Of a stretch of 64,000 nucleotides of DNA, positions 16,500 to 57,530 are shown one piece after another (within the stretch, counting starts at the first letter, position 1; every line of letters begins with the position of its first letter). Location: the sequence record NC_048182.1. One strand, 5' to 3'. A program made the position numbers and the translations under genes. The notes beneath the pieces are model-generated. The model made no database searches. It had not been told where the DNA came from and worked only from the letters and a program-made list of their open reading frames with translations.

Positions 16500-19400
16500 T
16501 TAGTTAGGTAAGTAGACAGACTGATTTAACGTCACAGGATTATCCTGGTTCCCACGACCTGTTGTTTCGAACCCGTCATTTGAAGCCAACGGAGTCGGAA
16601 CCGTAAAGGTAGTGTTAACAACAGTGAGATAATCCACACCTTCCACAGTGACTACCATACTGATTGGGACTGTACCATTGGTCAAGTCTCCAGCCTTACG
16701 GGTTACCACCATAGAGAAGTTATCGCCTGGATACTGTTTCACATTAGCTACTGATTCCACAATCGCGCTGTTAAACGTAATTGTTTTGAACCCGACACCT
16801 TCGATGTTAGCAATATCAACAATCGGTCCACCGTTAGTTCCACGCACCTGAGTCAGATCAAAGAACACTTCAACTGGGTCGTTACCAACTTCGTTAGTGA
16901 TATTTTTGACTGTCAGAGATTCTTGCGGGATGGTTATTTGTGTTGCATTGATGTTGTACCAATTGTTATCAACTCTAATGACACCTTGAAGAGTGACAGT
17001 ACCACCAGTCCACCCTGTTGTCATTGCCACGTAACGCTTTCTATTTCCGCTTGGATCGTTAGGTGCTTGGTTAGATGGAACATTAAGCACCGGCTTTTGG
17101 CTACCAGTAGGAGTGATTACTTCAACGTAGTGTTCATAAGAATCACCAAGTCCATAACCTTCACCCGCTTGGTTACCAATAGTGCCAATCCATTTGGTAT
17201 CTGCGTTTTTGGCCGGAAGAGATGTAGTCCAGAATGCGGAAGTCCAATCAGCTTGTGGTGGTGCTACAAATTTGACGAACACCTGCAAGGTGGATTTCTT
17301 CCCAGGTTGATCAATTAACTCAGCAGTGATGTTATTACTACCCACCACGCCAAGCGCCTGGTTAATACCAGCGACCCAGAAGTTTGTCTGGTCTACAAAC
17401 TGACGACGCAGAGCAAGTGAAATAGTACCAAAGGTGATGGTCCATTTGACATTCGGGTCATTGTTAGCCAGTAACTGGTCACCATACATTAAGGTAAGTG
17501 GGAGTTTAGCCGGAGAAAGAAGACTAATATCCACTGGAGCAGCCGAACTACCACCCACGGTACTTGTGAGTTTCAGTTGCGGAGTCTGCAAAACGACATT
17601 GACCGTGTAATTCTGGTCAATCCCGTTAATGCGGATAATACCGGTAAGAGTACCTGCTCCCACATTACCAGTCGGAACAATATCGATAGAGTACGGGAAG
17701 TTAGCGTCACCACTTGCGCTGATAGGACCAGCAGAAGCAATTTCACCACCCGTAACAATTTCTCCAAATGCTCCGGTAGGGAATGATACCTTAGAACTGC
17801 CTTGCATTTGCTCTAACTTGAATTTAACCGTGATTGGTGTTAACTCAGGGTTATACTCTTGTTTCTCAGTCGTACCAGTAACTGGAGCTTGTGCAATATT
17901 GTTAAAGGTATTATTGACTTTCCACCAACCTTTATAGTTAGCATCACCGGAAGCAATAAACCCTGTGATGTTTAAGCCAGTACCTGTCCAGCCGGTAGTG
18001 ACATCAGCACCAATTAGTTTACGATCAGATGGCGTTACATATTGCATTGGACTCTGTGTAAGTATAGAGTTTCCATTAGCGGGAACGCTGGTTAATTTCA
18101 GATCGCTAAAGTTATCGATGTTCACTATTGTCGCAGCAATACGAACCTGGAACTGAAGCTGTTTAGCCTCATTAGCGACTGCCTGAGTTGTTGACAATGC
18201 TGTTGCGCTTGTACTAGTATTATCAGAAAGAGTAGTCGTCAGTGACGATGTCTTAACTGTACCAGTAGGTACGTAGGTAATGGTTATTGGTGAATTAATA
18301 CTTCCTTTACCATGTGTAATCGCAATCAGTATGTTGTCACCGACTGCATCAAAAATACTTGATGAGCGGGTAAACTTAATATCAGGGCTTGTTGGACGAA
18401 CACGCTGAGTACCGTACCATGCAGTCATTGCTATAGATATGTACTGATTGGTGTGGTATTTGTAGTCTATTCCAAGGACAGGTAACGGCTCAAGTACAAA
18501 CCGAGGAGAGCTGGTAATAGACAGTTCCTCTCCGTTAGACTTATCGCTTTCGAAGTTAACAAACACCTGGACATTATCGAGAGTGTCTTCATCCACTTTC
18601 TTAACGAACTTAAAGTTCATTTTTCCAGAAGCTGAGTTAACATACTCGATGACACCAGCAGGTACAGTGGTAATGGTCACGCCTGTTTGTGTTACGTTAA
18701 ACGTAGTTCCGTTATTGGTGCAGGTATAAGGAACACCGATTGCCGCATCACCGAAACCACCAGTAAATGCTTTTCCACCAGTAAAGGTTAGAACAAGATT
18801 ATTCTTAGCTTTAAAGGTTACCGAAGCAGCTTTAGTGATATACGGCGTCACATTACCCACATTTTGCTTGGTCAGCTGGAATACAGCATCACCTACAAAT
18901 TGTGGAGAACTCGACGTGTGGGTGTACTCTATCACCAACTTACCGTCTTGTACCACGGCCTCGCTAAAGCTTAGCCCAGTAATCGTCGGTGAATTAATGG
19001 TGACTTCTGTCACACCCAACCCAGCCCATTCCAGATCAAATTCAATATGTCCTGTTTCCCCTGGTGCATAAGCAACCGGAGTTGGGGAGTAATTAACAAC
19101 CCAAGTATCACGGTAAGTTGGGAAGCCAGGTCCTGCCCAATAGAACATTTGCTGGACAGGCATATCGATGAAAGTATCGCGGAATGGAATTTTCAGAGCA
19201 TATATGAGGGTCTTAGTTGCGGCCTGGCCACTCACTGGACCGTTAACAACCCAGAACCATTTACCCACCGCTTTATGTTCCTCAGGAATTTCAAGGATCC
19301 AGTCATTAGCTGTAACGTTAGTGACTTCACATAAAGTAGAAATATCCGTAGTACCCGACATAATCGTCAAGGTGTTTGGGGTGATACCATACAGATATTC

Positions 19401-22400
19401 TCTTAATCCAAATGTTGGATTAGCGGTAATACGCGGATAGTCAGAAGGATCGGTAATTGTCATTGGCTGATCGAACTCACCTTTGGCAACTATACCAGGA
19501 CTGACTTCATATTCCACTTTAACGTTTACAGTCTTAGGACCTTTCTCACCCAGTGGAGTCGTAATCTCATAAAGGAAACTAGATACCTTAAACTCAGTGA
19601 TGGTAAAGTCACTTGCAACTGTGAAGGTCAGTTTACTGTCATTAACCGCAACATTATTTCCGTTGTGAGTAATAACTAAACCTGCACTACCTGTATCGAG
19701 GTTACCACCAATAATGGTTCCGATACCTGAGAACTCAAGAGGTGGAACAGCCGTTTTCAGATTGACCGTCAACTCTTGTTTGTGTGTTTCACCATACGCA
19801 GTCAGAATGATATCCGCCGTAAAGGTTTCATCAGCCGTTGCGTCTTTGATTACTTTAACCACAATCTCATCAGCAGAAACACTGACGATCTCAACCCACT
19901 CAGCCGGATTAGCAGTGATGGTCACTGCGGCATGGTTCAGTGGAAGGTTTGCACCTTGGTAGGTGGCAGAAGCACCCAGGTTTACAGTCTCTTGTTCAAA
20001 AGCATCAACCACGTCATCAACCAGAATGAATTCTACTTGAGACGGATCAGCGGCTTTCAATTTCAAAGTTACTGGATAAACAACACCGTCTTCATCAGTA
20101 ATGGTACCTTTAACCAATACATCACCTGTAGTTCCTGTCCCTTTCAGACTAATGAACTGAGTATGAGTTACTGGGTCTTTGATTCCATTAGCCACATAAG
20201 TAGCTGGACCTTCGATGGATGTGTAAACGAAGGTACTAATAAAGCGATACAATCCAGACTTACGAGCCTGAGTTAAGCGGAAGTCCACAGAAGTTGTTTT
20301 CTCTGTGCTGGTATTCACTTCGTTATTATCAATAGTCGAAAGCACCGGAGCGCCTGGGAGGTTTTGAGTAACGAAGCTTACTGGTAAGCGAGAACGATGG
20401 ATAGGAGCGCCATACGTCGCACCAGTGGTTAATTCCACGGTATCCAAAGTAATCGGTGTATTGATTTCAATGGTTCCAGGTTTATGACTCAACTCAACAG
20501 GAACGTGGTAACGACCTACTGAATCACGTTTTAAACCAGCTAATGGAATAGTAGAAGTTACCAACCCACTGCTCTTGTCTCTGATAACCAATTGACCATA
20601 AAGAACTGCAGCATTATCTAAAGTCCAGTTAGGACCTTTGAATGGGGTAGGGGTCGAACCCTGGGTAACCCAGTCGTACTCTGGTTGAGCTACGGTGAAC
20701 AGGAATTCACCAGCAACGTTAGCCTGAGGGACTTTATACTCACTCGCTGCAGTTGTTGATGCAGTGGCGCTGTAAGTGGACAGAGAGTGGTAAGTAGAGT
20801 ACTTGACACCTTTATAAGTGAAATCGAAATAGAAATTCACCCATGCAGTGCTTTTGAATCTGACAACCACACCGCTAGCAACACGTTCAACAATTTCCAA
20901 CTTAGCAGCCGCACCAGGTGAAGTATCACCATCACGCAACGCAATAGCTGTGAAATCAGAACTGGTGATTGGAACAGCGACCTCATTATAGAAAGCATCG
21001 AAGTTCACGTAATAAACATCACCGACTGCCCCACCAAGGTTAACATCTGTGTTACTTCTTGCCATGATGGTCAGAGTGTTGGCCGTACCCACAAGCAGAC
21101 GAACGTAAGAATACGCATACGTTTTGTTCAGTACTGGGGTATCACCACTCGTCGGACTGTACTTACATGAAACAACCAAGTTGGTATTAGCGGAAGCTAC
21201 TGTGGTTTTAATCACAAAGACTTTGCTGAACCCATCAGGGTCGTTGGTTACACTGGTTACTGTGTTTGGAGCAGGGATAGAACTATGATCAGGGTCGTGT
21301 TCAAAGTCCGTGTTAGGGACCAACAATCCTAAACGTTCCATTCTTACTTTGACTGTCAGGGAATTTCCACCAATTACAGAGGTAGGAGCAACCGGAGTGA
21401 CAGTAGCTACTTTTAACGTATTACCGCTAAACTTCAGAATAGTCATTGGAACTTCTACAACCATTTCGGTTTCGAAGCCAGCATCCTGAACAGTAATAGT
21501 AAAGCGCGCAGTACCAGTAACATCTACAGTTGTGTCTTTATAGATCACAGTGTAGGTGTCGTCACTATTGAGTTTGAAGTATGAAGTATTGCTGTTGAGC
21601 ATCAAACCAGTCAGAACCGCAGTATCAGAGATATCGCGACCATCCAACCCACTCAGAACCTTGAACGGTAATTTATACGTCTTACCATCTTCGACTTCAG
21701 CATCCGTTACATCAGCAACCGTAGGGTTACCCTCAACAGTTTGTTGTGTTAGTGTTAATGGGACCGTAATCTTAGCAACGCCTTTGTATTCAAAGATAAC
21801 ACTTGGGCGATGAGTAGTCTCAGCAGTAATTGTCTCCAGGAAGCGATAAGAGATACTCTCAGGATAAACCGTAGAGATACCAACTTTAGTACCTGATGAC
21901 ATTGAGATTTTCAGATTAGGATCATCATTTTCTAACACAACCCCGTTATAGCTAACTTGTTGCTGGAGAAGCGCTGGTGCGTATTGTGTACCAGTGCCCA
22001 CTGTTTCAAACGGAGAAACAGTTTCCAGAACAATCAGCATCACTTCGATCCCTAAGGTTACGTCTTTCCAGTCATATCCTTCAACCGGAGTTGCGTTACC
22101 ATTTTTCACTTTGAACCGCAGTACAACATTACCGCTAGCCAAAGAGGAACCGCCTGTGTAGTTAACAGTGATGGATCCATCACTATTCGGGGTTGTGCCA
22201 TCCACGGTGATTAACGTACCGAGCTGACTATTAGCCAGATCAAGTTCAACGTTATCAGCCAGGTTGTTCGATCCCCAAGAACCTGTGAACTTCATTGAAC
22301 CTGGTTTACCAACACCAACTGTAGCAGAGGCCGCAGCAGGATGGATATCCAGAACCGCATCGTTAAATGGCGCGATAACAAAGTTGGCAGATTGCTCTAA

Positions 22401-25400
22401 GGAGAACTGAATACCTTTAGCAATAACTTTAAAGGCAAACTTAACTGGAGCTGTTACACCAGCCACTTCCGACTTAATGACTTCCCAGACATTCGCATCA
22501 CCGGTATTGAACGCAGTTTGCTGAACGTACTTCCCACCCGTGACAACAATGTCAGTAATGGTACTGGTTAAGTCTACCCCATCATGCATAACCGTAAACG
22601 GTACTTTACCTTTCTGGGATACAACAACATTAGGAGATAAAACATTTTCAATTGTCGGTTTAACGACAGTCGTCAATTGTTTCACTTTCATGTTGAAGGC
22701 GTTGGCTGCAACAGGAGTGTCAATGCTTCTGGCGGTAACAATTACATTGGTCTCTACGTATTCTTGTGTTATGTCTTTCTTGAACGTGAAGTTAATACCG
22801 TCACCAGTAGGGAAATAACTGGCTACAGCAACCTCAGTATCAGGAGCAAGAGAATAAACACGAACAAGGTCATTGGAAGACACACCCCATGCTTTTTCAG
22901 CTAACCCAATACGCACACGACAGTTAAACGGAATGGTATCACCAAACTTACCAGTAATACCTTCATCCTGACTGATGACCAGAACCTTATTACCGTACCC
23001 CAACATAGGGACGTCAAGAAGAACGTAGTCAACACCAGCAACCCCACCTGTTGGGCCAGCAGCAGTTCTGTAAACACGGAACTGGTAGGTGATAGGGTTA
23101 GGTTGTGTTGCAGCAGCGGCTGTACCATCAATAACCATGTAAATCTGGGCTGGTTGGTTGGTAGTAACAGTTCTGACTGTCCAGTAAGGACTTCCACCGT
23201 TTGGTCCGGCTAAAGAGTAGGTGCTTGCAGGGATTGGTTCACCGCGATAGAACACATCGAAATAAATTCCCGAGTTCCCGCCACTCAACACCCCAACAAC
23301 TCTTTCAGGCCACCATGTTAATGAAGTAAAGTTTCCATCACGCACATTGGCATACAGTTCTTGACCGCTATACTGAGCGATGTTAAAACGAACTGTAACA
23401 TTTTTGGTTACCCGATATCCTACATCTCCAACCACAACAGCAAATGTTACATCGGAAGTGATTGGCTTGGTAGGATCACCAGCAATAACAACCCATGTGG
23501 TTAATGCCGCTGGGGCATTGGCCATTTTAACATTTGAGTTATCAACAATACTTACAGACTTAACTGACCAGCCAGACGGTAGTGTAGTGGACCCATTGAC
23601 AGCAACATCAAACGGCAATGGTCCGCGTTCCCATACCTTGGCACTTACCGCATGTGGGTTATCCAGGGTCAACACAGGAACTGCTGCACCTGCACCACGA
23701 AGGTTAACCTTCTGCATATACGTTTTGGTATATGTTACAGACCCGATTATGACCGAGAAAGTAATTGATGCCTGGTAATGAAGATCTTGATACTTGTTGA
23801 TATAAAGGTTACGAAGAGGGAACCGTGTTACTTCTTTGGCTGGGCTATTATTAAGCGGTGTACTGACTACAGTGTTATCGCTTAACGTTATTGTGGTATT
23901 CACATAACTGATTGGAGTACGACCAAATTTCAACTGTCTTTCGACATATCCAATCTGATTCCCAAGCGTTGAAGCATCAATGGTAATCTCATCTGGCTCA
24001 ACTTCACCGACCCAAGTCAACTCAGGTTCAAAGACTTCATAGTAAACATCAAAAGTCTGACGGTTCTTACCTTCCGTACCTGGCGGGTATCCGTTAGGAA
24101 GACTCGTGTTGTTTCCTGCAAAATCAACAGCAAGTTTACCCTTGACATAACCATTGGTCAAGCCATTGATACTTGCGGTAAACTGTGTACCACCTGCTGA
24201 GTTATTAGTTGCACTGACGATGTTGTACGATGCGATTAAGCCCAAATCCAAACGAGAGTAAGTTGTGATTTGACCACCTGGGTTACCCCAAGTAGGGTTA
24301 TCCGCATTACGGGTTTGAGAAGACATCGTTAAGTTGACTTTCAAACCACGTCCAATCGAGATAATTGGAAGTCCATCATCAGCAACTGGGAACGTATCAA
24401 GCGGAACGGTTGCTTTAAACTGCTGTTGGTCCCAAGCTTTGAAGTTGACCGGAGCCATTACTTCAAGAGTTTGTCCAGCAAATGCACCTTTCGTGAAAGT
24501 CACAATGAACTTCATCGTTTTCAGTGTATCTACTTTTGCAGCGTCGATCACCTGATAAACTGGACCAGTAGTAGAAGTAAGAGTCTTGTTACGCACCCAT
24601 ACATCTGGAAGGGTTGACGAAGCCGTCAGTCCATCCATAAGGTTTGTAGTGCCTGACATCAACGTAAATGGCGCAGGATAGTTTCCGTAGATGTCCCAGT
24701 TTGGAGGAGTATCAGGGAGAACAATACGAACGTTAGGAATAACCGACACGTTCATTTTCAAGCGGTTGATATTGTCAGTATACGTATCGAATCCTGGGAG
24801 ATCCCAGCAGAAGACCAACGTGTTGGTTTCTTCTTTCAATGCCGTATAGTTAACAGTGATAGTGGATGTAGCGTTATCAATATCAAAACTATTAACAGAG
24901 ATAACACCTTTCAAATCACTTACACTGTCATTCATAACCGGGACAACAGTCTTTTCCCCACGATAAGTTAGGTTGAACTGAATTGAACCAGTTTCTCCTG
25001 CTTTCAAGAACACAGGGTTTGGTTTATAAGTGCCTGTTAAATGAGCTGGGTTGGCCGGGACACCATACATGTACCACTCGATGGTGTGACTAAGATCAAC
25101 CGTACCTCCACGGAATGGAGCTTTAAAGATCCAATACTGTCTGGAGTACAACCCACCTATTACATCAGCCCCACGGATACACTGAACCCAGTTCACGTTA
25201 GTGGTAGCGAAAGGATCAAGTATCTGACAGAATTCTATCCCTCTGTTAGGGTCATTTTTGAATTCCGTCATTTGAGAAGTAATGTCATTACTGCCAGACG
25301 TAATCTTAAACAGCTGACCAAACTTCTTCCACAAGACCAATGGGTTACCTGGACCACCTCCAACCAAACCAGTAACAACTGGGTAGTCGGCAGGGTTAAC

Positions 25401-28400
25401 ATAAGTAACCGGAACTGCTTGGGTACCTTCGTGAGTTAAACCAGTACCTGGATCGGTATAAGCGTATTTGAAGTTGGCAGTGAACTTAGAGTTAATTGCC
25501 GTGTTCAGAGGGAGCTTACAACGATAGGTTAATGAGGTAGCTGTTTTAGTCTCAATGGTTAAGACATCGGGATCCAGCGCAGTGATAACCAGGTTAGGGT
25601 CATTGACTGGAATGTTGAGTGTGTTTAACTTAACCGTAACCGTACCGGAAGGCTTCACGTCATCATTACCAGCACTGATTGCAGCAGGAGCACTGAGTGT
25701 CAGCGGCCTAACTTTAACATCAAAAATTATAGGACGGGTGTAGTAATCGTAATAAAGTTCTTTTGGATCTTTATACGGGAAGGTATCAAGGTTAATGAAA
25801 CGATCAAACCACAGTGACGCGTTGTACGTTCCAGGCAACATCCCTTTTAAAGTAAAGTAACGCCAGTAGTAACCACCAAAACTAGTAGTCCTGCTAGTGT
25901 ACTCTAATGTTGCCACACCACTAAGGTCACTCTGTTCCGTATTAAGGAAATCACCAGGAGCACCAAAACCACCTGCACGGAATTTCTCAGAAATTAACAC
26001 ATCTAAGGTTTCCCCAACAAACACAGAAAGTGTTGTAGGTTCTGAGTTAATCACTACCTTATATGTCTTCTGGTCCCAAGCTGGAAGCTGGTAGGTGATG
26101 TCGTGGTCAACTGTCCATGGATACCCACGGTAGGTTGAACTGAATGTGGTAGTGACCACGGTATTGGTCGCCACTTGTTCAGCGTACTCGGCACGGTACT
26201 TTTTACCGGTGTAAACAATGTACTTCGATTTGACACCGTTTTGAGTAACTGTACCTGTCGCTGTCCATGTTGATGCCAAATCAAGACCATCGCACATAAA
26301 GCTCAGTGCTGAGAGATCTTTATCAACAAACATGTCAGCCAGCAAGATTGGGTAAACATCTTTCCCGCTTGCTACCATTGCGCTTGAGGTATACCCCAGA
26401 GGAACTTCGACTTCACGTGTATAGGTTTGACCGCCGTACTTATAAGCCAACTGAAGAATCTCTTTGGTCTCAGCACGATTACCAACCCACAACGGCCCAG
26501 CTAATTTGTAGTTAAAGGTATCAGCACCTGTTCCGGTAATAGTCATTACCTGAGCATTTCGGTCAGTCGCGTTATACGACTTAACGTTAATGGTCAGAAG
26601 ACCTTTACCTATTTCGGCATTAGTATCCAGAGGGAGACCGCCAAACAGGATTTCAAGCTTGTATGTACCGGTGTCGTTGTGTTTACCTTCAATCAGGTTA
26701 TCACGATTACCGATTTCAATACCAGGTTCACCCATGATACGTACTTGGATGTCCCCTTCCCAAGACAGCAACTCTGGACTAACTTCCCCAGCGCCTTCTT
26801 GATACTGCCAAATGAACTTACACTGACCAACACCTTCAGCGTCACCAGAAAGAGTAACGATGGTCCACTCTGTGTTATTAGGATCCTTCTTAACCTCAGT
26901 GATCGATACCTGTGCAGGAATCGTTGAGAGGTCTTGCCTAAAGACAGCGGTAGAAGCCGGTAAGTCTTTGTACAGCGGACGGAACCGAACATCACGGGTC
27001 TCGCCTAACACGCCTTCAGAAACTGTCGGAGTAAACTGACAGTAGAAGCGAGGTTGTACGTGACCAACGATATTTAACGTGGTGTCAAAACGGAAGGTCT
27101 GTGGTTCTGCCACACCTTTCAATGTGTACGTCAGTTCCAGGGGAACTGTCACATCAGAAGTGGTTGGAGGAGCACCCACTACTTCAAAGGAGAAGGCGGT
27201 GTACATTTCCACGTACTGGTTAGGGACAGTCTGAGGAACAATACTTTCACGAGTGGTTGGTGCAATAACACCACCGGTACCGCTTTGGTTAAAGTTCAGA
27301 GACTGACGGAAAGTAGCACGGTCATAAATTGACAGAGTTAACTTGTCGTTATTTGTAAGCGTCGGGATTGGAGTTGTAATGCGGGTGTTGAATTGAACCT
27401 TCAACGTTTTAGGCGTGGCCGCCCCAACATCGTAACTAACTTCGATCTCATCCAGATAAGATTTCTTCGTACCAGGAATAGAAGCAAGATCAGCTCTCAG
27501 AACAACGCCATTTCCATCACGAGATGTAATCACAACACCTTGGTCACCAGCAGCGGTGACTTTGTACGACAGACCAGGAGCATTACCAGCCAACTCATAA
27601 TCGCCATATTTAACCTTGATAGGCAAGGTCCCTGTTGTCATCCAGTCGAGTTCAATTTCATCATCGTTAGAAACGAGAGTGAAAGCTTCATCGGAGGAAG
27701 TAGAAATAACAGGCAGCGTTACAATAACGAAATCTTTACCCTCTACCGGAGTCTGACTACCCCCAACACGGTTGAACCGGAATTGAGCAGTATCCTGACC
27801 TTGACCTTTTAAGGTATACGGTAATTGAGAGTTAGTTAATTGACCAATTAACAGGTTAGCTGGGATAATTGATGCAGGATCCAAAGTAACGCCATGAATG
27901 ACATCGCCTTTATATTTGAACACAAATTCTGCAACAGCTTGATCGCCTGCCTTACCTTCCAGTTTAGACTGAACCGGAGTACCAACAAAATCAATACCAT
28001 CAAACTGAGTGATGTTGAACGTAATCTCAGTATCGATAGTGTACGCGTTTCCACCAATTTCATAACTTAGTGTCAGAGGAAGCTTGGTAACAACTGCTTG
28101 TGTCTCATCACCCTTAACAACGTAATAACTGTTAGGAGCAACAAAGGCAACAAAGTTGTTTGTGCCGTTTGGTGTATACAGGGTAATTGGAATTTCTTTA
28201 CCACGTGAATCAACCAATTTAACACGGAACTGCCCGCGGTCATATACTTTCACTTGCGTGACAGGATTTGAACCAACAGCGACAGTAGGAACTTTGATTT
28301 CAGTTGGAACAATAAGTTCATTACTGCTTACGGCCTGAGTATCCGGATCGGTATATTCGGCATGAACAGTAAACTGACAGTTATAGGTCGTACCTTGTAA

Positions 28401-31400
28401 CCCACCTTGGTCAAGACTGATACGCAATTTATCAGCTTGTTTCTCAACAAGAGATGTCGAACCAGTAGGAGCCGCGGTGTAAGTAATAGCAAGGTTGTTG
28501 TTACTGACCGGAACACCAGAATAGTTGTACTTCAGTACAAAGTCCAGCACATCGGTATGATAACCTGACAAAGTGCTTTGCTTACTTTCAAGGTTAAGCC
28601 CAGGTGCCCATTTAACATCAACGGTCATTGGAACTGTAACAGTATCAGACTGAGTTGGATGCATAAACACCAAAGTCATCGGATACTTATAACCGCGTTT
28701 TAAACGATACTTGATGATAGCTTTTTCTGATACCGGATCCCAAATAGGCTCGTCAATATCAATGTTGTCAGGAATAACCGAACGTGTACGGTCTAGTCGA
28801 ATACCATTGGTAACGTTATCATACTTATAAGTAAACGTTCCGCTGATTTCACCTTCATCACCTGAGTTACCAACAATGTCAGTAGGAGTCAGGGTATGAC
28901 GGAAAGTGATACCGTCCCAGCCGTCGATGTTAAACGTCTTAGGAACATAAGCGGTAAGCTGAGTATAGTCAACGTTAATGGTGTAGAACATGCGAACGTT
29001 AATGAATTCGCTATGTGGTTGTGTATCTGCACCGATAATGGTCCAGCTACGCCCACCGAAACTAACATACCGGTTAACAGGTAATCCACCACCATTATAG
29101 TTCATCAAGGTAGTGATGTCACGTTTACCGATCATTGCCTTAAAGTTCAGGCTGCCAGTTTCCCACATACGAGTGTTAATAACACCGTCATCAAACTGAG
29201 TAATCACCAGCTGTTGAATACGGATAGTCATATTCAAAACAACCCTGAGTTTCTGTAACTCACCCGTTACCGGATCAGTATAGGAGAACTCATACTCCAT
29301 AGGAGCGTTGTGCGCTGAGTTAGGTCCCTGTAAAGTTGTGTAGGTAAAATCAATGTAATCTTCACCAACAGCAACTTCCGTGACTTGCTTAGTTCCTGGG
29401 TTATTTGGACTGATAATGGCGCGATTTAAATCCAGCAGTGAAATTGGCTCACCGGCAAAACTCAGTTTAAGCGTTGCACGACCAGTTTCATCTAACCAAA
29501 CAGGTTCTGAGGTATCTTGTTCTGTAACACGCAGGACACGAGACTGTTTGATGTTAGCCGTGATGTACATACGACCACGACGATTAGCAGGCAGGTTAGC
29601 CTGTGCTCCGTCTTTAGGATCAGTATAGAACAGTTTAGCTACGCCGCCCTCGACTTCGTCCAGTTTGTAATACGTCCACACCAACATACCGGTGGCATTG
29701 TCATAACGAATACCTTCATTACGCAATTGAGGAGGCATGACTGTACGAGCGCTGTCAAGTACCGCTGTTTTGGTAATCTCTTTGCCGTCAGAATAAACAC
29801 GGAAAGAAACTGTTCCACGCTCGTCTGAATCGCCATCGATACCCCAGTACATCGGGAACACAACAACTTCGGTGTTTACCGCACCATCATCATTGTTACC
29901 TGAACCACCTTGGTCTCCGCCACCGCCACCGCCGGTTTCGCCATCACCACCACCAGGGTTGGTGTTTGGATCCCAGACTTTAATACGAAGTGTGCCTTCG
30001 TAAGACATGTCATGGTTGGCACCGTCGTACGGTTGCTTCCAGGTAAACTTAACAGGAACGACTCTAACAGTATCGGTGGAATACTTGATAAGCCATTCGT
30101 TTCCTTCCCAGGTGACAAACTGATCATCGGCAGCGGCCCAGGTCATATTCAACCCGATTGCTTGTGAAGTTTTATCTTCACCGTTAACCATCACCTTGAA
30201 TAATGGACCACCCTTCTGATAACGAATAACGTCACGAGGGTCATTAAACGGGATTACCTGAACAACAGAAACTTTAGAAATGATAATGTTGATCGTACGG
30301 AACAAAGTGTGTTTAACACCATCATCGGAGAGATAGGTAAACTTCTGCTCAAACGAATCTTCAATATCTTCGCCAGGCTTTTGAGAATCACGAATAACCG
30401 TATAGTTAACCGCATCAGCAGTTGCACTGTCCACACGGATCAACTGGTGAAGGTCACCACGAGGACCTGGAAGGATCCCAAGGTTATACGCAGGGACAGG
30501 GGTGTCACCGTAGAAGGCTTTCACCTCCATTTGCTTCTGGTCGTCGATATAACCGCGAAGCGTGGTGGTCAGTCCTTTAATGCCGAACACAGGTTTACTA
30601 TCAGCACGCACTAACTCAAAGTTAATGTACGCTGGAGCTTGATAAGGTGTAGAACCATCAACGTAGTTAAACGTTGCGATGTACAGATCCTTATCGGTTT
30701 CCAAACCTAAAGGCGGAACCCCTGTAATCTTACCAGCGTAAATCATCCCACCATCAGACAGTGTTTCCACATACGTCAGATCACCGTATTTCTTAGGTGA
30801 GGCAAATGTACTTGGTGGAGAAGGGATAGTGATAGGCTGACCTTTAAAGAAACCATACACAGTAACCTGAACATCATCACCACGAGCTGCTTTAATAGTA
30901 GCAGGTCGAACTTCAAACGTCAGATCAAAAGCAGTGTCTTTATCGATGCGCACTTGAATACGGAAAGTACGACGAACAGGACGACCGTTGTACATGTGAG
31001 TAACACGCACGATGATCTGGTCTGTAACTGGGTTATCAGATGAACCAAAGATGGTTTCACCGGTGATGGACAGTTTGTCGTCAGAACGAGTAGGGATGGT
31101 GTAACCAGCCGCTGTTGTGATTTCAACTGTTGCTGTCTGAGTAATATCCAGCGTTCCACCAAACCAATAGGTATTAGGGATACTGAAGTTATCACCACGA
31201 GATGTCGTAATAAACTCAGGAAGGTTAGAGGTGATGACTGGAAGATTCGCTTCCACCAAGACCAGTTCTTGAATGAACAGTGGATAAATACCAACACCAA
31301 TAGACGGGTCAGTAATGGTTACTGTACCTGACTCAATAGTGTCGTAATCAATCCAATCCAGACTTTCGCGTTCTGTCTTATACTGACCAAAGAACAAATC

Positions 31401-31859
31401 ACCGAAGGCTGACATTGGACCGTCAACAGTGGTAGCTGCATCTTGGGTCAGGAGAACACCGTAGGTATTCTTGTATTCCAACCACAGGAGAACGGCAGGT
31501 TCTTCATTAGTCTTACTGAAAGCTTTTAACGCATCAGTATCCACAATGTTGACAAACGGAATACCGAAGTCATCAAGGATATCCTGCATAGAAACTTTCT
31601 GGAACTCGATGTCGACACGAGCAAAGCCAGTCTTACGAGATACAATACAGACACGCTGAATACCATCAGCAAACGTCTTAACGTCTTCAATAACGAGATC
31701 ACCCGCAACCAAAGAGTCATAACGTTCTTTTGCTAAAGCAAGTTCAGCCGGATCACCGTCAATCTCTAACTGCGCAATGCGCTGAGTCAACCATTGACGA
31801 ACAGGGGTATACATCGGGTCATTAATGACCTTCTTGTTTACCTTAATCATTTCAGCCAT
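16500..31859 (-). CDS. Giant Ig-like repeat protein, putative virion fibre, with distinct N-terminal ~200-aa domain (5119 aa)
   Basis: AGGAG SD; about 12 copies of the same module as the 3124-aa protein; N-terminal domain paralogous to 43854-44465 and 56685-57530. Confidence 0.8.
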   Translation of the reverse strand: MAEMIKVNKKVINDPMYTPVRQWLTQRIAQLEIDGDPAELALAKERYDSLVAGDLVIEDVKTFADGIQRVCIVSRKTGFARVDIEFQKVSMQDILDDFGIPFVNIVDTDALKAFSKTNEEPAVLLWLEYKNTYGVLLTQDAATTVDGPMSAFGDLFFGQYKTERESLDWIDYDTIESGTVTITDPSIGVGIYPLFIQELVLVEANLPVITSNLPEFITTSRGDNFSIPNTYWFGGTLDITQTATVEITTAAGYTIPTRSDDKLSITGETIFGSSDNPVTDQIIVRVTHMYNGRPVRRTFRIQVRIDKDTAFDLTFEVRPATIKAARGDDVQVTVYGFFKGQPITIPSPPSTFASPKKYGDLTYVETLSDGGMIYAGKITGVPPLGLETDKDLYIATFNYVDGSTPYQAPAYINFELVRADSKPVFGIKGLTTTLRGYIDDQKQMEVKAFYGDTPVPAYNLGILPGPRGDLHQLIRVDSATADAVNYTVIRDSQKPGEDIEDSFEQKFTYLSDDGVKHTLFRTINIIISKVSVVQVIPFNDPRDVIRYQKGGPLFKVMVNGEDKTSQAIGLNMTWAAADDQFVTWEGNEWLIKYSTDTVRVVPVKFTWKQPYDGANHDMSYEGTLRIKVWDPNTNPGGGDGETGGGGGGDQGGSGNNDDGAVNTEVVVFPMYWGIDGDSDERGTVSFRVYSDGKEITKTAVLDSARTVMPPQLRNEGIRYDNATGMLVWTYYKLDEVEGGVAKLFYTDPKDGAQANLPANRRGRMYITANIKQSRVLRVTEQDTSEPVWLDETGRATLKLSFAGEPISLLDLNRAIISPNNPGTKQVTEVAVGEDYIDFTYTTLQGPNSAHNAPMEYEFSYTDPVTGELQKLRVVLNMTIRIQQLVITQFDDGVINTRMWETGSLNFKAMIGKRDITTLMNYNGGGLPVNRYVSFGGRSWTIIGADTQPHSEFINVRMFYTINVDYTQLTAYVPKTFNIDGWDGITFRHTLTPTDIVGNSGDEGEISGTFTYKYDNVTNGIRLDRTRSVIPDNIDIDEPIWDPVSEKAIIKYRLKRGYKYPMTLVFMHPTQSDTVTVPMTVDVKWAPGLNLESKQSTLSGYHTDVLDFVLKYNYSGVPVSNNNLAITYTAAPTGSTSLVEKQADKLRISLDQGGLQGTTYNCQFTVHAEYTDPDTQAVSSNELIVPTEIKVPTVAVGSNPVTQVKVYDRGQFRVKLVDSRGKEIPITLYTPNGTNNFVAFVAPNSYYVVKGDETQAVVTKLPLTLSYEIGGNAYTIDTEITFNITQFDGIDFVGTPVQSKLEGKAGDQAVAEFVFKYKGDVIHGVTLDPASIIPANLLIGQLTNSQLPYTLKGQGQDTAQFRFNRVGGSQTPVEGKDFVIVTLPVISTSSDEAFTLVSNDDEIELDWMTTGTLPIKVKYGDYELAGNAPGLSYKVTAAGDQGVVITSRDGNGVVLRADLASIPGTKKSYLDEIEVSYDVGAATPKTLKVQFNTRITTPIPTLTNNDKLTLSIYDRATFRQSLNFNQSGTGGVIAPTTRESIVPQTVPNQYVEMYTAFSFEVVGAPPTTSDVTVPLELTYTLKGVAEPQTFRFDTTLNIVGHVQPRFYCQFTPTVSEGVLGETRDVRFRPLYKDLPASTAVFRQDLSTIPAQVSITEVKKDPNNTEWTIVTLSGDAEGVGQCKFIWQYQEGAGEVSPELLSWEGDIQVRIMGEPGIEIGNRDNLIEGKHNDTGTYKLEILFGGLPLDTNAEIGKGLLTINVKSYNATDRNAQVMTITGTGADTFNYKLAGPLWVGNRAETKEILQLAYKYGGQTYTREVEVPLGYTSSAMVASGKDVYPILLADMFVDKDLSALSFMCDGLDLASTWTATGTVTQNGVKSKYIVYTGKKYRAEYAEQVATNTVVTTTFSSTYRGYPWTVDHDITYQLPAWDQKTYKVVINSEPTTLSVFVGETLDVLISEKFRAGGFGAPGDFLNTEQSDLSGVATLEYTSRTTSFGGYYWRYFTLKGMLPGTYNASLWFDRFINLDTFPYKDPKELYYDYYTRPIIFDVKVRPLTLSAPAAISAGNDDVKPSGTVTVKLNTLNIPVNDPNLVITALDPDVLTIETKTATSLTYRCKLPLNTAINSKFTANFKYAYTDPGTGLTHEGTQAVPVTYVNPADYPVVTGLVGGGPGNPLVLWKKFGQLFKITSGSNDITSQMTEFKNDPNRGIEFCQILDPFATTNVNWVQCIRGADVIGGLYSRQYWIFKAPFRGGTVDLSHTIEWYMYGVPANPAHLTGTYKPNPVFLKAGETGSIQFNLTYRGEKTVVPVMNDSVSDLKGVISVNSFDIDNATSTITVNYTALKEETNTLVFCWDLPGFDTYTDNINRLKMNVSVIPNVRIVLPDTPPNWDIYGNYPAPFTLMSGTTNLMDGLTASSTLPDVWVRNKTLTSTTGPVYQVIDAAKVDTLKTMKFIVTFTKGAFAGQTLEVMAPVNFKAWDQQQFKATVPLDTFPVADDGLPIISIGRGLKVNLTMSSQTRNADNPTWGNPGGQITTYSRLDLGLIASYNIVSATNNSAGGTQFTASINGLTNGYVKGKLAVDFAGNNTSLPNGYPPGTEGKNRQTFDVYYEVFEPELTWVGEVEPDEITIDASTLGNQIGYVERQLKFGRTPISYVNTTITLSDNTVVSTPLNNSPAKEVTRFPLRNLYINKYQDLHYQASITFSVIIGSVTYTKTYMQKVNLRGAGAAVPVLTLDNPHAVSAKVWERGPLPFDVAVNGSTTLPSGWSVKSVSIVDNSNVKMANAPAALTTWVVIAGDPTKPITSDVTFAVVVGDVGYRVTKNVTVRFNIAQYSGQELYANVRDGNFTSLTWWPERVVGVLSGGNSGIYFDVFYRGEPIPASTYSLAGPNGGSPYWTVRTVTTNQPAQIYMVIDGTAAAATQPNPITYQFRVYRTAAGPTGGVAGVDYVLLDVPMLGYGNKVLVISQDEGITGKFGDTIPFNCRVRIGLAEKAWGVSSNDLVRVYSLAPDTEVAVASYFPTGDGINFTFKKDITQEYVETNVIVTARSIDTPVAANAFNMKVKQLTTVVKPTIENVLSPNVVVSQKGKVPFTVMHDGVDLTSTITDIVVTGGKYVQQTAFNTGDANVWEVIKSEVAGVTAPVKFAFKVIAKGIQFSLEQSANFVIAPFNDAVLDIHPAAASATVGVGKPGSMKFTGSWGSNNLADNVELDLANSQLGTLITVDGTTPNSDGSITVNYTGGSSLASGNVVLRFKVKNGNATPVEGYDWKDVTLGIEVMLIVLETVSPFETVGTGTQYAPALLQQQVSYNGVVLENDDPNLKISMSSGTKVGISTVYPESISYRFLETITAETTHRPSVIFEYKGVAKITVPLTLTQQTVEGNPTVADVTDAEVEDGKTYKLPFKVLSGLDGRDISDTAVLTGLMLNSNTSYFKLNSDDTYTVIYKDTTVDVTGTARFTITVQDAGFETEMVVEVPMTILKFSGNTLKVATVTPVAPTSVIGGNSLTVKVRMERLGLLVPNTDFEHDPDHSSIPAPNTVTSVTNDPDGFSKVFVIKTTVASANTNLVVSCKYSPTSGDTPVLNKTYAYSYVRLLVGTANTLTIMARSNTDVNLGGAVGDVYYVNFDAFYNEVAVPITSSDFTAIALRDGDTSPGAAAKLEIVERVASGVVVRFKSTAWVNFYFDFTYKGVKYSTYHSLSTYSATASTTAASEYKVPQANVAGEFLFTVAQPEYDWVTQGSTPTPFKGPNWTLDNAAVLYGQLVIRDKSSGLVTSTIPLAGLKRDSVGRYHVPVELSHKPGTIEINTPITLDTVELTTGATYGAPIHRSRLPVSFVTQNLPGAPVLSTIDNNEVNTSTEKTTSVDFRLTQARKSGLYRFISTFVYTSIEGPATYVANGIKDPVTHTQFISLKGTGTTGDVLVKGTITDEDGVVYPVTLKLKAADPSQVEFILVDDVVDAFEQETVNLGASATYQGANLPLNHAAVTITANPAEWVEIVSVSADEIVVKVIKDATADETFTADIILTAYGETHKQELTVNLKTAVPPLEFSGIGTIIGGNLDTGSAGLVITHNGNNVAVNDSKLTFTVASDFTITEFKVSSFLYEITTPLGEKGPKTVNVKVEYEVSPGIVAKGEFDQPMTITDPSDYPRITANPTFGLREYLYGITPNTLTIMSGTTDISTLCEVTNVTANDWILEIPEEHKAVGKWFWVVNGPVSGQAATKTLIYALKIPFRDTFIDMPVQQMFYWAGPGFPTYRDTWVVNYSPTPVAYAPGETGHIEFDLEWAGLGVTEVTINSPTITGLSFSEAVVQDGKLVIEYTHTSSSPQFVGDAVFQLTKQNVGNVTPYITKAASVTFKAKNNLVLTFTGGKAFTGGFGDAAIGVPYTCTNNGTTFNVTQTGVTITTVPAGVIEYVNSASGKMNFKFVKKVDEDTLDNVQVFVNFESDKSNGEELSITSSPRFVLEPLPVLGIDYKYHTNQYISIAMTAWYGTQRVRPTSPDIKFTRSSSIFDAVGDNILIAITHGKGSINSPITITYVPTGTVKTSSLTTTLSDNTSTSATALSTTQAVANEAKQLQFQVRIAATIVNIDNFSDLKLTSVPANGNSILTQSPMQYVTPSDRKLIGADVTTGWTGTGLNITGFIASGDANYKGWWKVNNTFNNIAQAPVTGTTEKQEYNPELTPITVKFKLEQMQGSSKVSFPTGAFGEIVTGGEIASAGPISASGDANFPYSIDIVPTGNVGAGTLTGIIRINGIDQNYTVNVVLQTPQLKLTSTVGGSSAAPVDISLLSPAKLPLTLMYGDQLLANNDPNVKWTITFGTISLALRRQFVDQTNFWVAGINQALGVVGSNNITAELIDQPGKKSTLQVFVKFVAPPQADWTSAFWTTSLPAKNADTKWIGTIGNQAGEGYGLGDSYEHYVEVITPTGSQKPVLNVPSNQAPNDPSGNRKRYVAMTTGWTGGTVTLQGVIRVDNNWYNINATQITIPQESLTVKNITNEVGNDPVEVFFDLTQVRGTNGGPIVDIANIEGVGFKTITFNSAIVESVANVKQYPGDNFSMVVTRKAGDLTNGTVPISMVVTVEGVDYLTVVNTTFTVPTPLASNDGFETTGRGNQDNPVTLNQSVYLPN

Positions 31860-31941: not shown

Positions 31942-31978
31942 CATAAGAGAATCCCCCAACCCGTGAGGGCTGGAGGAT
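31942..31978 (-). terminator. Hairpin downstream of the 1488-aa gene
   Basis: Minus strand ATCCTCCAGCCC-TCAC-GGGTTGGGGGAT then TCTCTTATGTTTT. Confidence 0.65.
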
Positions 31979-31985
31979 TATCTAA

Positions 31986-36452: not shown

Positions 36453-36527
36453 TAAAAAGCTCCAATAAAGGATATGGTATTGTCCGCAATGGACATAATA
36501 TCAGAGTCTGAGTAAATAAATATAGAC

Positions 36528-36566
36528 CATAGAATCCCTCCTATTCCAATTAAGGAATAGGAGAGA
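36528..36566 (-). terminator. Hairpin downstream of nrdB
   Basis: 13-bp stem TCCCTCCTATTCC/GGAATAGGAGAGA just after the nrdB stop. Confidence 0.7.
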
Positions 36567-37705: not shown

Positions 37706-37916
37706 GTGTTCAAAATCCTGTTTCAAAGTAGTTAGAGTTTCTTAGCTAAAGATTGGAGGGTAAATAAAACAATACTTGAGATGTGTATTATTTAGAACTT
37801 AAACATGGTTACTCCGAAAGGAGGGACGGGGGAAGGGGGATTTGTTTATATACGGTTTACGTAGTAAACATCCTCTTTTTCTTTTCACCCGGTAAACTTG
37901 CATTTCTTTTCAAGCC

Positions 37917-43804: not shown

Positions 43805-43856
43805 CCCCTACCCCTCCTTTCGGAGCGGGTAGGGTGTATGCTTTATTTCTTTTTTA
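43805..43856. terminator. Terminator between convergent genes, near-copy of the 6343 hairpin
   Basis: CCCTACCCCTCC-TTTC-GGAGCGGGTAGGG plus T-rich tract. Confidence 0.75.
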
Positions 43857-44465
43857 TACTATAGCGTTAACGTCTTCAATAAAGAAGAGATCGCCAGTAA
43901 CTGAATCGATGTTGATTGCTTCAACACGGAATGTTCCTGAGGCTTTGGTAACAGGGTCCATTTGCGGCGCAGCTTCACTTGCTACAGTGTCCCAGTAGAT
44001 ATCTTCCATGACACTCATTACTTCATCTGGGTTGGCGTTAGCTGCGTTGATTACAACACCGTATCGTTCAGTGCTGTGAATATAAACCAATCCACGACCT
44101 TGACTATCGCCGTTAATAGCTGCAACTAAAGCATCTGCATCGATGTACTCAGTTGGGATAATGCCGAACTCTGTAAAGATATCAGCAATGTTGACTTTCT
44201 CTACAGAAATGTCAGCACGCAAGAAACCTGTTTTACGGGAAACGAAACAAGCACGGACAATACCGTTACTCATACCTACTGGAGGTTCAATGATGACGTC
44301 CGACCAAATCAATCCGTCGTATCGACGTTTGGCCAGAGCAAGTTCTGCCGCTGCCGGTTCGCCCAGCGCTTCCAGTTTGGCAATGCGCTCAGCCATGAAC
44401 CTTTTGGCGGACAAGAACACAGGGTCTTTAACCCTTTTGCTGTTTGTACCGGTAACTGTGATCAT
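43854..44465 (-). CDS. Stand-alone paralogue of the N-terminal domain of the 5119-aa protein (203 aa)
   Basis: AELALAKRRYDGL..DVIIE..GIVRACFVSRKTGF vs AELALAKERYDSL..DLVIE..GIQRVCIVSRKTGF. Confidence 0.85.
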   Translation of the reverse strand: MITVTGTNSKRVKDPVFLSAKRFMAERIAKLEALGEPAAAELALAKRRYDGLIWSDVIIEPPVGMSNGIVRACFVSRKTGFLRADISVEKVNIADIFTEFGIIPTEYIDADALVAAINGDSQGRGLVYIHSTERYGVVINAANANPDEVMSVMEDIYWDTVASEAAPQMDPVTKASGTFRVEAINIDSVTGDLFFIEDVNAIV

Positions 44466-44600
44466 ATTAATACCTATGGTGAAACTCGCTAAGGAAACTC
44501 AATCTCAAACGATTCTTTCGTTCAAGAAGTTCTAATTATTTATAGGCTGATATTATCCTATTGACATACCATACACATGTTAAAGAAAAGGTTACGAATA

Positions 44601-56155: not shown

Positions 56156-56174
56156 TTACATTCAGTTTCAGACA

Positions 56175-56191
56175 TATATTATTTAAGTGTA
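56175..56191 (+). promoter_or_regulatory. phiKZ-like early promoter
   Basis: TATATTAT-N4-GTGTA; flanks nearly identical to the 52166 copy. Confidence 0.7.
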
Positions 56192-56684: not shown

Positions 56685-57530
56685 ATGCGTAAATATCCAA
56701 CTCCTTGGCAATACCTGGTTGATCTCGTTGGTCAAGGCCGACTGAAAGCAGCATATGCCAGCGGTGACGCGAAACAACGCGCTGAGGCCGAAAAGAACTT
56801 CCGCGGCTTAACTGAAGATGAAGTCGTCTTTGAAAAGCTGGTCGATCGTAAAGATGGCAAGCTGGGTTATTCCCTGACTTGTAAAGTTCGTGGTTTCAAA
56901 ATCAAAGAACTGACCTTTGCTACAGGTTCTCTGGCCAAGATGATTCAGCAGAATGCTAATCTGATGGTTCAGCACGAAGACCTGGCAACTTCCCAGATCA
57001 CTGGCTTCTATTTCTGTGAAGACGCCGATCAACTTCATCTTCTGGTTCACCCGAATAGCAATATTCATGAAGCACTGAAAATGACCGGTTATGAATTCCA
57101 ACCGGAACACTACAGCGCTACCATGTATGCTGGTCGTGATGAAATCCTGCAGGCTGATGGTGTTGTAAGTATCGAACACCCAGTTATCGCTGGTCAAATC
57201 TACATCAGCTACGTTCAGCCTACTGGCTCTGCTGAGCAGGAACTGGAAAATGCTGGTTTCGGTGACTTCGGTAAACGTGATGGTCTGGAATCTCTTCAGA
57301 TTAATAACGCTCCTTATTCAGAAACCGCTCCGGTTACTGATCTTACTAAAGGTGGTCAGATTGGTGCTGTTGCTGAACCAACAGCACCGGCTGCTGAAGA
57401 TAAAGTGATTATCCCTTCTGTTGTGAACCCAGTTATCGTTAAAGAAGACGAAACTGCAGTTGAAAGCGAAACTGCTAATGAGCAGCCAGCTGAAGAACCA
57501 GTGGTTCAGATCCAAAAGAAAAAGAAATAA
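56685..57530 (+). CDS. Distant paralogue of the 5119-aa N-terminal domain with acidic low-complexity tail (281 aa)
   Basis: Gapless 62-aa alignment (13 identities) to the 5119-aa N-terminus; matching ADGVVSIEHPVIAGQIY / ESGTVTITDPSIGVGIY. Confidence 0.7.
   Translation: MRKYPTPWQYLVDLVGQGRLKAAYASGDAKQRAEAEKNFRGLTEDEVVFEKLVDRKDGKLGYSLTCKVRGFKIKELTFATGSLAKMIQQNANLMVQHEDLATSQITGFYFCEDADQLHLLVHPNSNIHEALKMTGYEFQPEHYSATMYAGRDEILQADGVVSIEHPVIAGQIYISYVQPTGSAEQELENAGFGDFGKRDGLESLQINNAPYSETAPVTDLTKGGQIGAVAEPTAPAAEDKVIIPSVVNPVIVKEDETAVESETANEQPAEEPVVQIQKKKK

Follow-up and report, generated by a model that had tools for sequence, protein, structure and literature searches.

The 203-residue protein gp150 of Edwardsiella phage pEt-SU is a free-standing copy of the N-terminal domain of the 5119-residue giant gp133, and both belong to an undescribed domain family of about 200 residues that is limited to the jumbo-phage clade of OBP, pEt-SU and the Aeromonas phages. 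The reading preferred here, to which a probability of roughly 40% is assigned, is that accessory giant fibres share the domain as their attachment or oligomerisation module and that gp150 is a fibre-less subunit co-assembling with the fibre-bearing copies. The window analysed was a stretch of 64,000 nucleotides corresponding to positions 124001-188000 of the pEt-SU genome (NC_048182.1; 276,734 bp), which megablast matched at 100% identity; positions refer to the window unless they are marked as genome positions, and the main features are collected in Table 1.

Table 1. Features of the gp150 locus and of related loci in the window.
Feature	Position	Strand	Basis
gp133, 5119-aa giant carrying the module	16500..31859	-	ORF and annotation; orthologues begin with the module
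N-terminal module, aa 1-205 of gp133, paralogous to gp150	31245..31859	-	BLASTP, profile, model superposition
Stem-loop directly after the gp150 stop, followed by TATG (likely terminator)	43806..43837	-	-30.1 kcal/mol, z -6.33
gp150, free-standing 203-aa module copy	43854..44465	-	ORF and translation; HOV39_gp150, hypothetical protein
Conserved box (A/T)GAATC(G/T)TTTG(A/G), about 40 nt upstream of the gp150 start	44505..44516	-	five-phage alignment
Early-promoter-like motif for the divergent gp151, not for gp150	44540..44563	+	OBP/N1M2 consensus match
Distant third member of the fold, 281 aa, acidic disordered tail, early operon	56685..57530	+	hhalign, AF2, Foldseek

In a BLASTP comparison of gp150 with gp133, 61 of 158 positions were identical (39%; E 2e-31; query residues 8-164 against subject residues 8-163). 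A profile of gp150 orthologues (41 sequences, 201 positions) matched gp133 with its positions 6-195 at E 2.7e-41 and covered residues 6-198 or so of the giant. From the coverage of both alignments it follows that gp150 is the N-terminal domain of the giant from end to end: the whole protein corresponds to about residues 1-200 of gp133, including the C-terminal SGT..I/V strand, which bears out the alignment proposed in the first-pass annotation. The distance of 12 kb given there also held, the two start codons being 12.6 kb apart. A profile search of the complete genome returned gp150 and the gp133 N-terminus as the only two copies of the module, and no similarity was found between gp150 and the neighbouring giants gp132 (3124 aa) and gp134 (1488 aa). 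These two flank gp133 in a minus-strand block beside the gene for the small subunit of ribonucleotide reductase, and repeat similarity was found between gp132 and gp133. Two further statements of the first-pass annotation stood in part. It had described gp150 as a lone minus-strand gene; gp150 is the single one between plus-strand runs, but such isolated genes are common in this genome, which switches to the minus strand about 25 times. It had also given the gene its own terminator; a strong hairpin does follow the stop codon, but its tail lacks a clean T-run and a scan based on T-runs made no call.

The free copy is old and well conserved. A word-indexed search returned gp150 homologues in 58 clusters from isolates and metagenomes (195-219 aa, 51-91% identical), whose alignment contained 47 invariant columns, and dN/dS between gp150 and its orthologue in Pantoea phage Survivor was 0.10. 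The gene is under purifying selection and conserved over its full length; it is a functional gene and not a decaying fragment of the giant gene. By tblastn gp150 was found in 33 phage records, including pEt-SU, Survivor, Shewanella phage SXP01, Klebsiella phage N1M2, Serratia phages Yubaba and Sureiya, Kosakonia phage Kc263, Erwinia phage AH04, Pseudomonas phage OBP and 19 Aeromonas jumbo phages. A search with the giant's N-terminal part retrieved the same 33, and a second copy of the module was present in 33 of the 33 phage records having the fused form. gp150 is a conserved core gene of the clade. In the lineages checked (OBP, N1M2, SXP01, Survivor, Aeromonas phage D3 and one metagenomic lineage) the free gene lies antisense at the same position, between small plus-strand early genes and upstream of the genes for a phosphoesterase and thymidylate synthase. 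In a quick maximum-likelihood tree of the modules, the principal group of free copies, 15 rows drawn from phages of the Petsuvirus-like and Aeromonas types, formed one clade with an SH-aLRT of 91 and the giant N-termini (19 rows) a separate one with an SH-aLRT of 97, so that the free copy is an old paralogue and not a recent duplicate. The Survivor orthologue (PP885733.1, L016:1501-2112, plus strand) is annotated from an internal ATG at 1546 and is thereby 15 codons short; the full frame of 203 codons is conserved with pEt-SU.

A profile search of 1.84 billion representative sequences yielded 77 clusters carrying the domain, 64 of them at E below 1e-10. In these it occurs either as a free protein of about 200 aa or as residues 1-200 of proteins of 355-5283 aa, the exceptions being two metagenomic giants with a tandem double domain. 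All orthologues of gp133 (2412-5283 aa, with two shorter rows of 355 and 955 aa) start with the module, and the remainders of the large proteins that bear it are unrelated or variable. One fused copy was counted in pEt-SU, two in OBP and four in D3, each genome having one free copy in addition: in OBP the module heads OBP_207 (4079 aa) and OBP_209 (711 aa) and the free copy is OBP_226, and in D3 it heads four of the four large proteins of the block (678, 1077, 2794 and 1077 aa) and the free copy is gp087. Judged from these sequences, a discrete, shared N-terminal module of 200 residues is supported. Across both paralogues 27 columns were invariant, mostly in the N-terminal arm, the helical hairpin and the first sheet (among them N8, K10, D14, P15, R27, E32, R48, Y49, D56, E60, R77, T79, G80, F81, R83 and D85), a pattern that would fit an interface shared by free and fused copies.

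Directly after the module, gp133 residues 205-350 or so (30800-31245, minus strand) are strongly conserved among the giant orthologues, with conserved residues including N212, P214, R221, G222, F233, T240, T249, G252 and Y253; this stretch is absent from the free copy and may be a giant-specific connector. The two metagenomic giants of 3223 and 2903 aa (L030:10001-19672 and L031:591-9302, both plus strand) begin with tandem copies at about residues 40-120 and 215-400, and the gene next to these giants (1060 or 921+ aa) starts with another copy. The contig of the former keeps a free antisense copy of 202 aa (L032:14818-15426, minus strand). The idea that the tandem arose by fusion of the free copy was rejected, because the contig retains its syntenic free copy and, of the tandem copies, the first is no nearer to the free clade. 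Also rejected was the idea that gp150 and the module-less gp134 are parts of one split module-bearing protein, given that gp134 has no similarity to gp133 or gp132 and that D3 retains its free copy though all its large proteins have the module. In the search for related loci, the giant N-terminus alone gave no match and an alignment query returned only free copies.

The AlphaFold2 model of gp150, calculated from the orthologue alignment (pLDDT 88.8, pTM 0.81), combines a helical hairpin (residues 17-49) with alpha/beta sheets and a short strand at the N-terminus. An N-terminal fragment of gp133 (BFVD model) was superposed on it with a TM-score of 0.89 and an rmsd of 2.2 over 204 columns. This fragment and the N-termini of large OBP and Aeromonas phage proteins were the best matches among predicted viral structures; weaker matches (TM 0.4-0.5) were proteins of the Erwinia phages RisingSun, Joad and RAY, some of them annotated as virion structural, and RisingSun gp197 sits in a structural gene cluster. 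A Foldseek search of the PDB with the gp150 model gave no match at E up to 0.001. Nor did any of the 48,161 chains compared by VIA-align rise above noise, the best match (Z 4.0) covering the helical hairpin only. Pfam and PHROG scans of gp150 and of the giant N-terminus returned only noise at E up to 1 and assigned no family, and Pfam assigned none to gp132 or gp134 at E up to 0.01; in gp133 a sub-threshold match to NPCBM was obtained (19.9 bits against a cut-off of 23.9). The family DUF7941 (PF25613), suggested by an ESM Atlas score of 0.86 with 152 shared features, was discarded, as the score was below trust level and PF25613 was absent from the Pfam scan of gp150 at E up to 1.

The same window encodes a third protein with this fold, distantly related to the other two. 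The 281-residue protein matched the gp150 family in hhalign with a probability of 72% (E 3.5e-5, 148 columns). Residues 1-178 of its AF2 model show the same order of helices and strands as gp150, and a disordered, acidic stretch of about 100 residues, ending in KKKK, forms the tail; in Foldseek the model matched those of gp150 and the gp133 N-terminus at E 7e-10 to 1e-8. Its operon lies behind a perfect early-promoter motif (56166-56189), and its OBP orthologue has 220 aa. Since this member belongs to an early operon, the fold is not exclusively tied to giant fibres and may be a general interaction domain.

An early-promoter consensus has been published for OBP and N1M2 (PMC7058600). It matched the pEt-SU genome 23 times, in 23 of 23 cases on the plus strand, and within the window the plus-strand sites begin at 37908, 44540, 49375, 52157, 52906, 56166 and 57583. 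The whole-genome consensus search found no such motif for gp150, for the giant genes or for any other minus-strand gene, which sets both gp150 and the giants apart from the early regime of their neighbours. Strand appears to separate temporal classes in pEt-SU, as all 23 motifs lie on the plus strand and none serves a minus-strand gene, and gp150 is a separate transcription unit. The core of the conserved box upstream of gp150, GAATC.TTTG, was invariant in pEt-SU, Survivor, N1M2, SXP01 and OBP. The 12-nt box has one other copy in the genome (genome positions 83776-83787, minus strand), 34 nt upstream of a gene for a putative structural protein of 411 aa (phrog_3337); both sites are also present in N1M2 and SXP01, and the second one in Survivor. 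A shared promoter box was nevertheless rejected, because the second copy falls in codons 2-5 of a divergent gene and about 0.13 chance hits are expected per genome, so that the match is not significant; the second copy is probably coincidental. A TATG late-promoter signal upstream of gp150 was likewise dropped, as it is not conserved in N1M2, SXP01 and OBP. GC-rich hairpins followed by TATG within 0-8 nt were observed on the minus strand after gp150 (43806-43837) and upstream of gp133, gp134 and two further minus-strand genes (31950-31985 and 36520-36560 in the window; about 192450 and 247140 in the genome). They may be combined terminator and late-promoter units, and the one after gp150 would then read antisense into early genes.

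Parallels are known for the principle that the N-terminal module of a fibre also exists as a separate protein; it is the domain family itself that is undescribed. The decoration proteins Hoc of T4 and pb10 of T5 join a capsid-binding domain to Ig-like domains. They resemble gp133 in that a small, presumed binding domain is followed by a beta-sandwich chain, which in Hoc and pb10 projects from the particle. In contrast to the giants, whose chains run to thousands of residues, they have one to four Ig domains and no free copy of the binding domain, and Pfam, Foldseek and VIA-align linked gp150 to them neither by sequence nor by fold. The gp37 adaptor of K1-5/K1E/SP6-type podophages is reportedly a free-standing homologue of the N-terminal domain of T7 gp17, a finding said to go back to Leiman et al. 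in 2007. Like gp150 it is a stand-alone relative of a fibre N-terminal domain, and it serves as a virion-bound base on which receptor-binding proteins are mounted. It differs in that the K1-5-type spikes have lost the domain whereas the pEt-SU giant keeps it, and in that pEt-SU is a myovirus-type jumbo phage; no T7 tail-fibre match was obtained for gp150 in Pfam or PHROG (E up to 1), and no fold match in the PDB.

[quoted passage not shown] In both cases chimallivirus-type jumbo phages encode paralogues that share an N-terminal domain of about 200-250 residues and differ in their C-terminal parts, and the domain stands on several paralogues (two fused and one free in OBP, four and one in D3). 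The domains themselves differ. hhalign of the gp150 family against the gp131-like domain gave a probability of 0.07% (E 0.67), and profiles of the gp150 family and of the 281-residue relative found no match in the phiKZ genome; by hhalign and the profile searches, homology between the gp150 domain and the gp131-like N-domain (about 250 aa) was rejected. Unlike the phiKZ set, moreover, the gp150 family heads proteins of up to 5283 aa beside the ribonucleotide reductase gene and not in the tail cluster, and its free copy is encoded alone, 12 kb away. pEt-SU also has a true gp131-like set, consisting of a free N-domain protein of about 254 aa and then three fibres of 1232, 1262 and 1700 aa; the free gene, a homologue of OBP_142, extends from genome position 83773 to about 84537 and the three large proteins occupy genome positions 84589-97277, all on the plus strand. 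Sequence comparison shows no kinship between the two domains, yet the gp150 family repeats the free-plus-fused design of the gp131 family.

Shared N-terminal modules with differing remainders are the usual signature of attachment or oligomerisation modules, and because this one is found on one to four large proteins per genome with a conserved arm and hairpin, it is most simply read in that way. To that extent the comparison between genomes lends partial support to the first-pass interpretation of the domain as a putative virion-docking module, which is a reasonable one. The gp131-type precedent and the shared architecture together favour a mixed base with gp150 subunits. In such a base gp150 would co-assemble with the N-terminal domains of gp133, or in relatives of several large proteins; only some positions would carry a chain of more than 5000 residues, and the fibre-less subunits would fix the number and spacing of the giant chains per site. 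We infer for gp150 a virion location, self-association and a filler role. The tandem double domains look as would be expected for a module working in multiples. That D3 keeps a free copy though all its large proteins have the module argues that the free copy is not simply an adaptor for module-less fibres. Electron microscopy showed no fibres on N1M2 but did show fibres on the tail of Kc263; the literature on N1M2, Kc263, ZPAH34 and RisingSun held no data on gp150-type or giant proteins.

Three other explanations were weighed against the mixed base. The module could act as a monomer that binds a site repeated on the capsid, neck or sheath, in the manner of the capsid-binding domains of T4 Hoc or T5 pb10, with free and fused copies occupying the same sites without co-assembly, as in the first-pass suggestion that the free copy may occupy, cap or compete. 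gp150 would then be a plain decoration or cement protein filling most sites, with gp133 on a few and the ratio set by expression. The residues invariant in both paralogues are of a surface type, chains of beta-sandwich repeats such as the giant are typically monomeric, and the ribosome-binding site is AAGGAG for gp133 but no more than AGG for gp150, all of which speaks for such a division. We nevertheless regard it as rather unlikely, since no fold similarity to solved decoration proteins was found and the tandem double domains and the several module-bearing proteins per genome fit an oligomeric base better. If gp150 were instead an assembly factor outside the virion, it would pair transiently with the N-terminal module of the nascent giant, as a chaperone or as a placeholder that keeps the chain from self-associating too early, and would come off no later than at attachment. 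Its place in a separate transcription unit at a distance from the structural block is consistent with this, as is the OBP record, in which OBP_226 lacks the label 'virion structural protein' that many other genes have. Known fibre chaperones, however, are usually encoded beside their clients, no chaperone family was matched in Pfam or PHROG, and gp150 is about as conserved between pEt-SU and OBP (52-55% identity) as the module that would be its client (60%), so that this role is improbable.

The same label is missing in that record from OBP_205-209, the OBP giants included, which together with the lack of visible fibres on N1M2 and the third member with its acidic tail in an early operon points in another direction. 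The fold could be a general protein-interaction or targeting domain unrelated to docking on the virion, and the giants something other than virion fibres; gp150 and its 281-residue relative would have roles inside the infected cell, such as localisation or host take-over, and the module of the giant would direct it to the same partner. This is doubtful in turn, because giant chains of beta-sandwich repeats with no signal peptide are hard to place except on the particle, because the weak Foldseek links lead mainly to chimallivirus proteins annotated as virion structural, such as RisingSun gp197, and because gp150 does not lie behind an early promoter.

The preferred reading of a fibre base with fibre-less subunits can be extended, speculatively and with little probability, to one in which free and fused modules form a mixed oligomeric socket of an unseen fold, the ratio of free to fused copies sets the number of fibres per site, and the early relative with the acidic tail engages the same partner in the cell. 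If true, the clade as a whole would have a new way of mounting the longest phage appendages known. The proteins concerned, of 3000-5000 residues, are products of the largest genes in a widespread clade of jumbo phages with hosts in Edwardsiella, Pseudomonas, Klebsiella, Serratia, Erwinia, Aeromonas and Shewanella, and the new family provides an annotation for about 80 protein clusters now labelled hypothetical. A confidently modelled 200-residue domain that occurs in free and in fused form is also an experimental handle that can be expressed, tagged, crystallised or used as bait, and it could help to show where on the particle the giant chains sit and whether fillers set the number of fibres.
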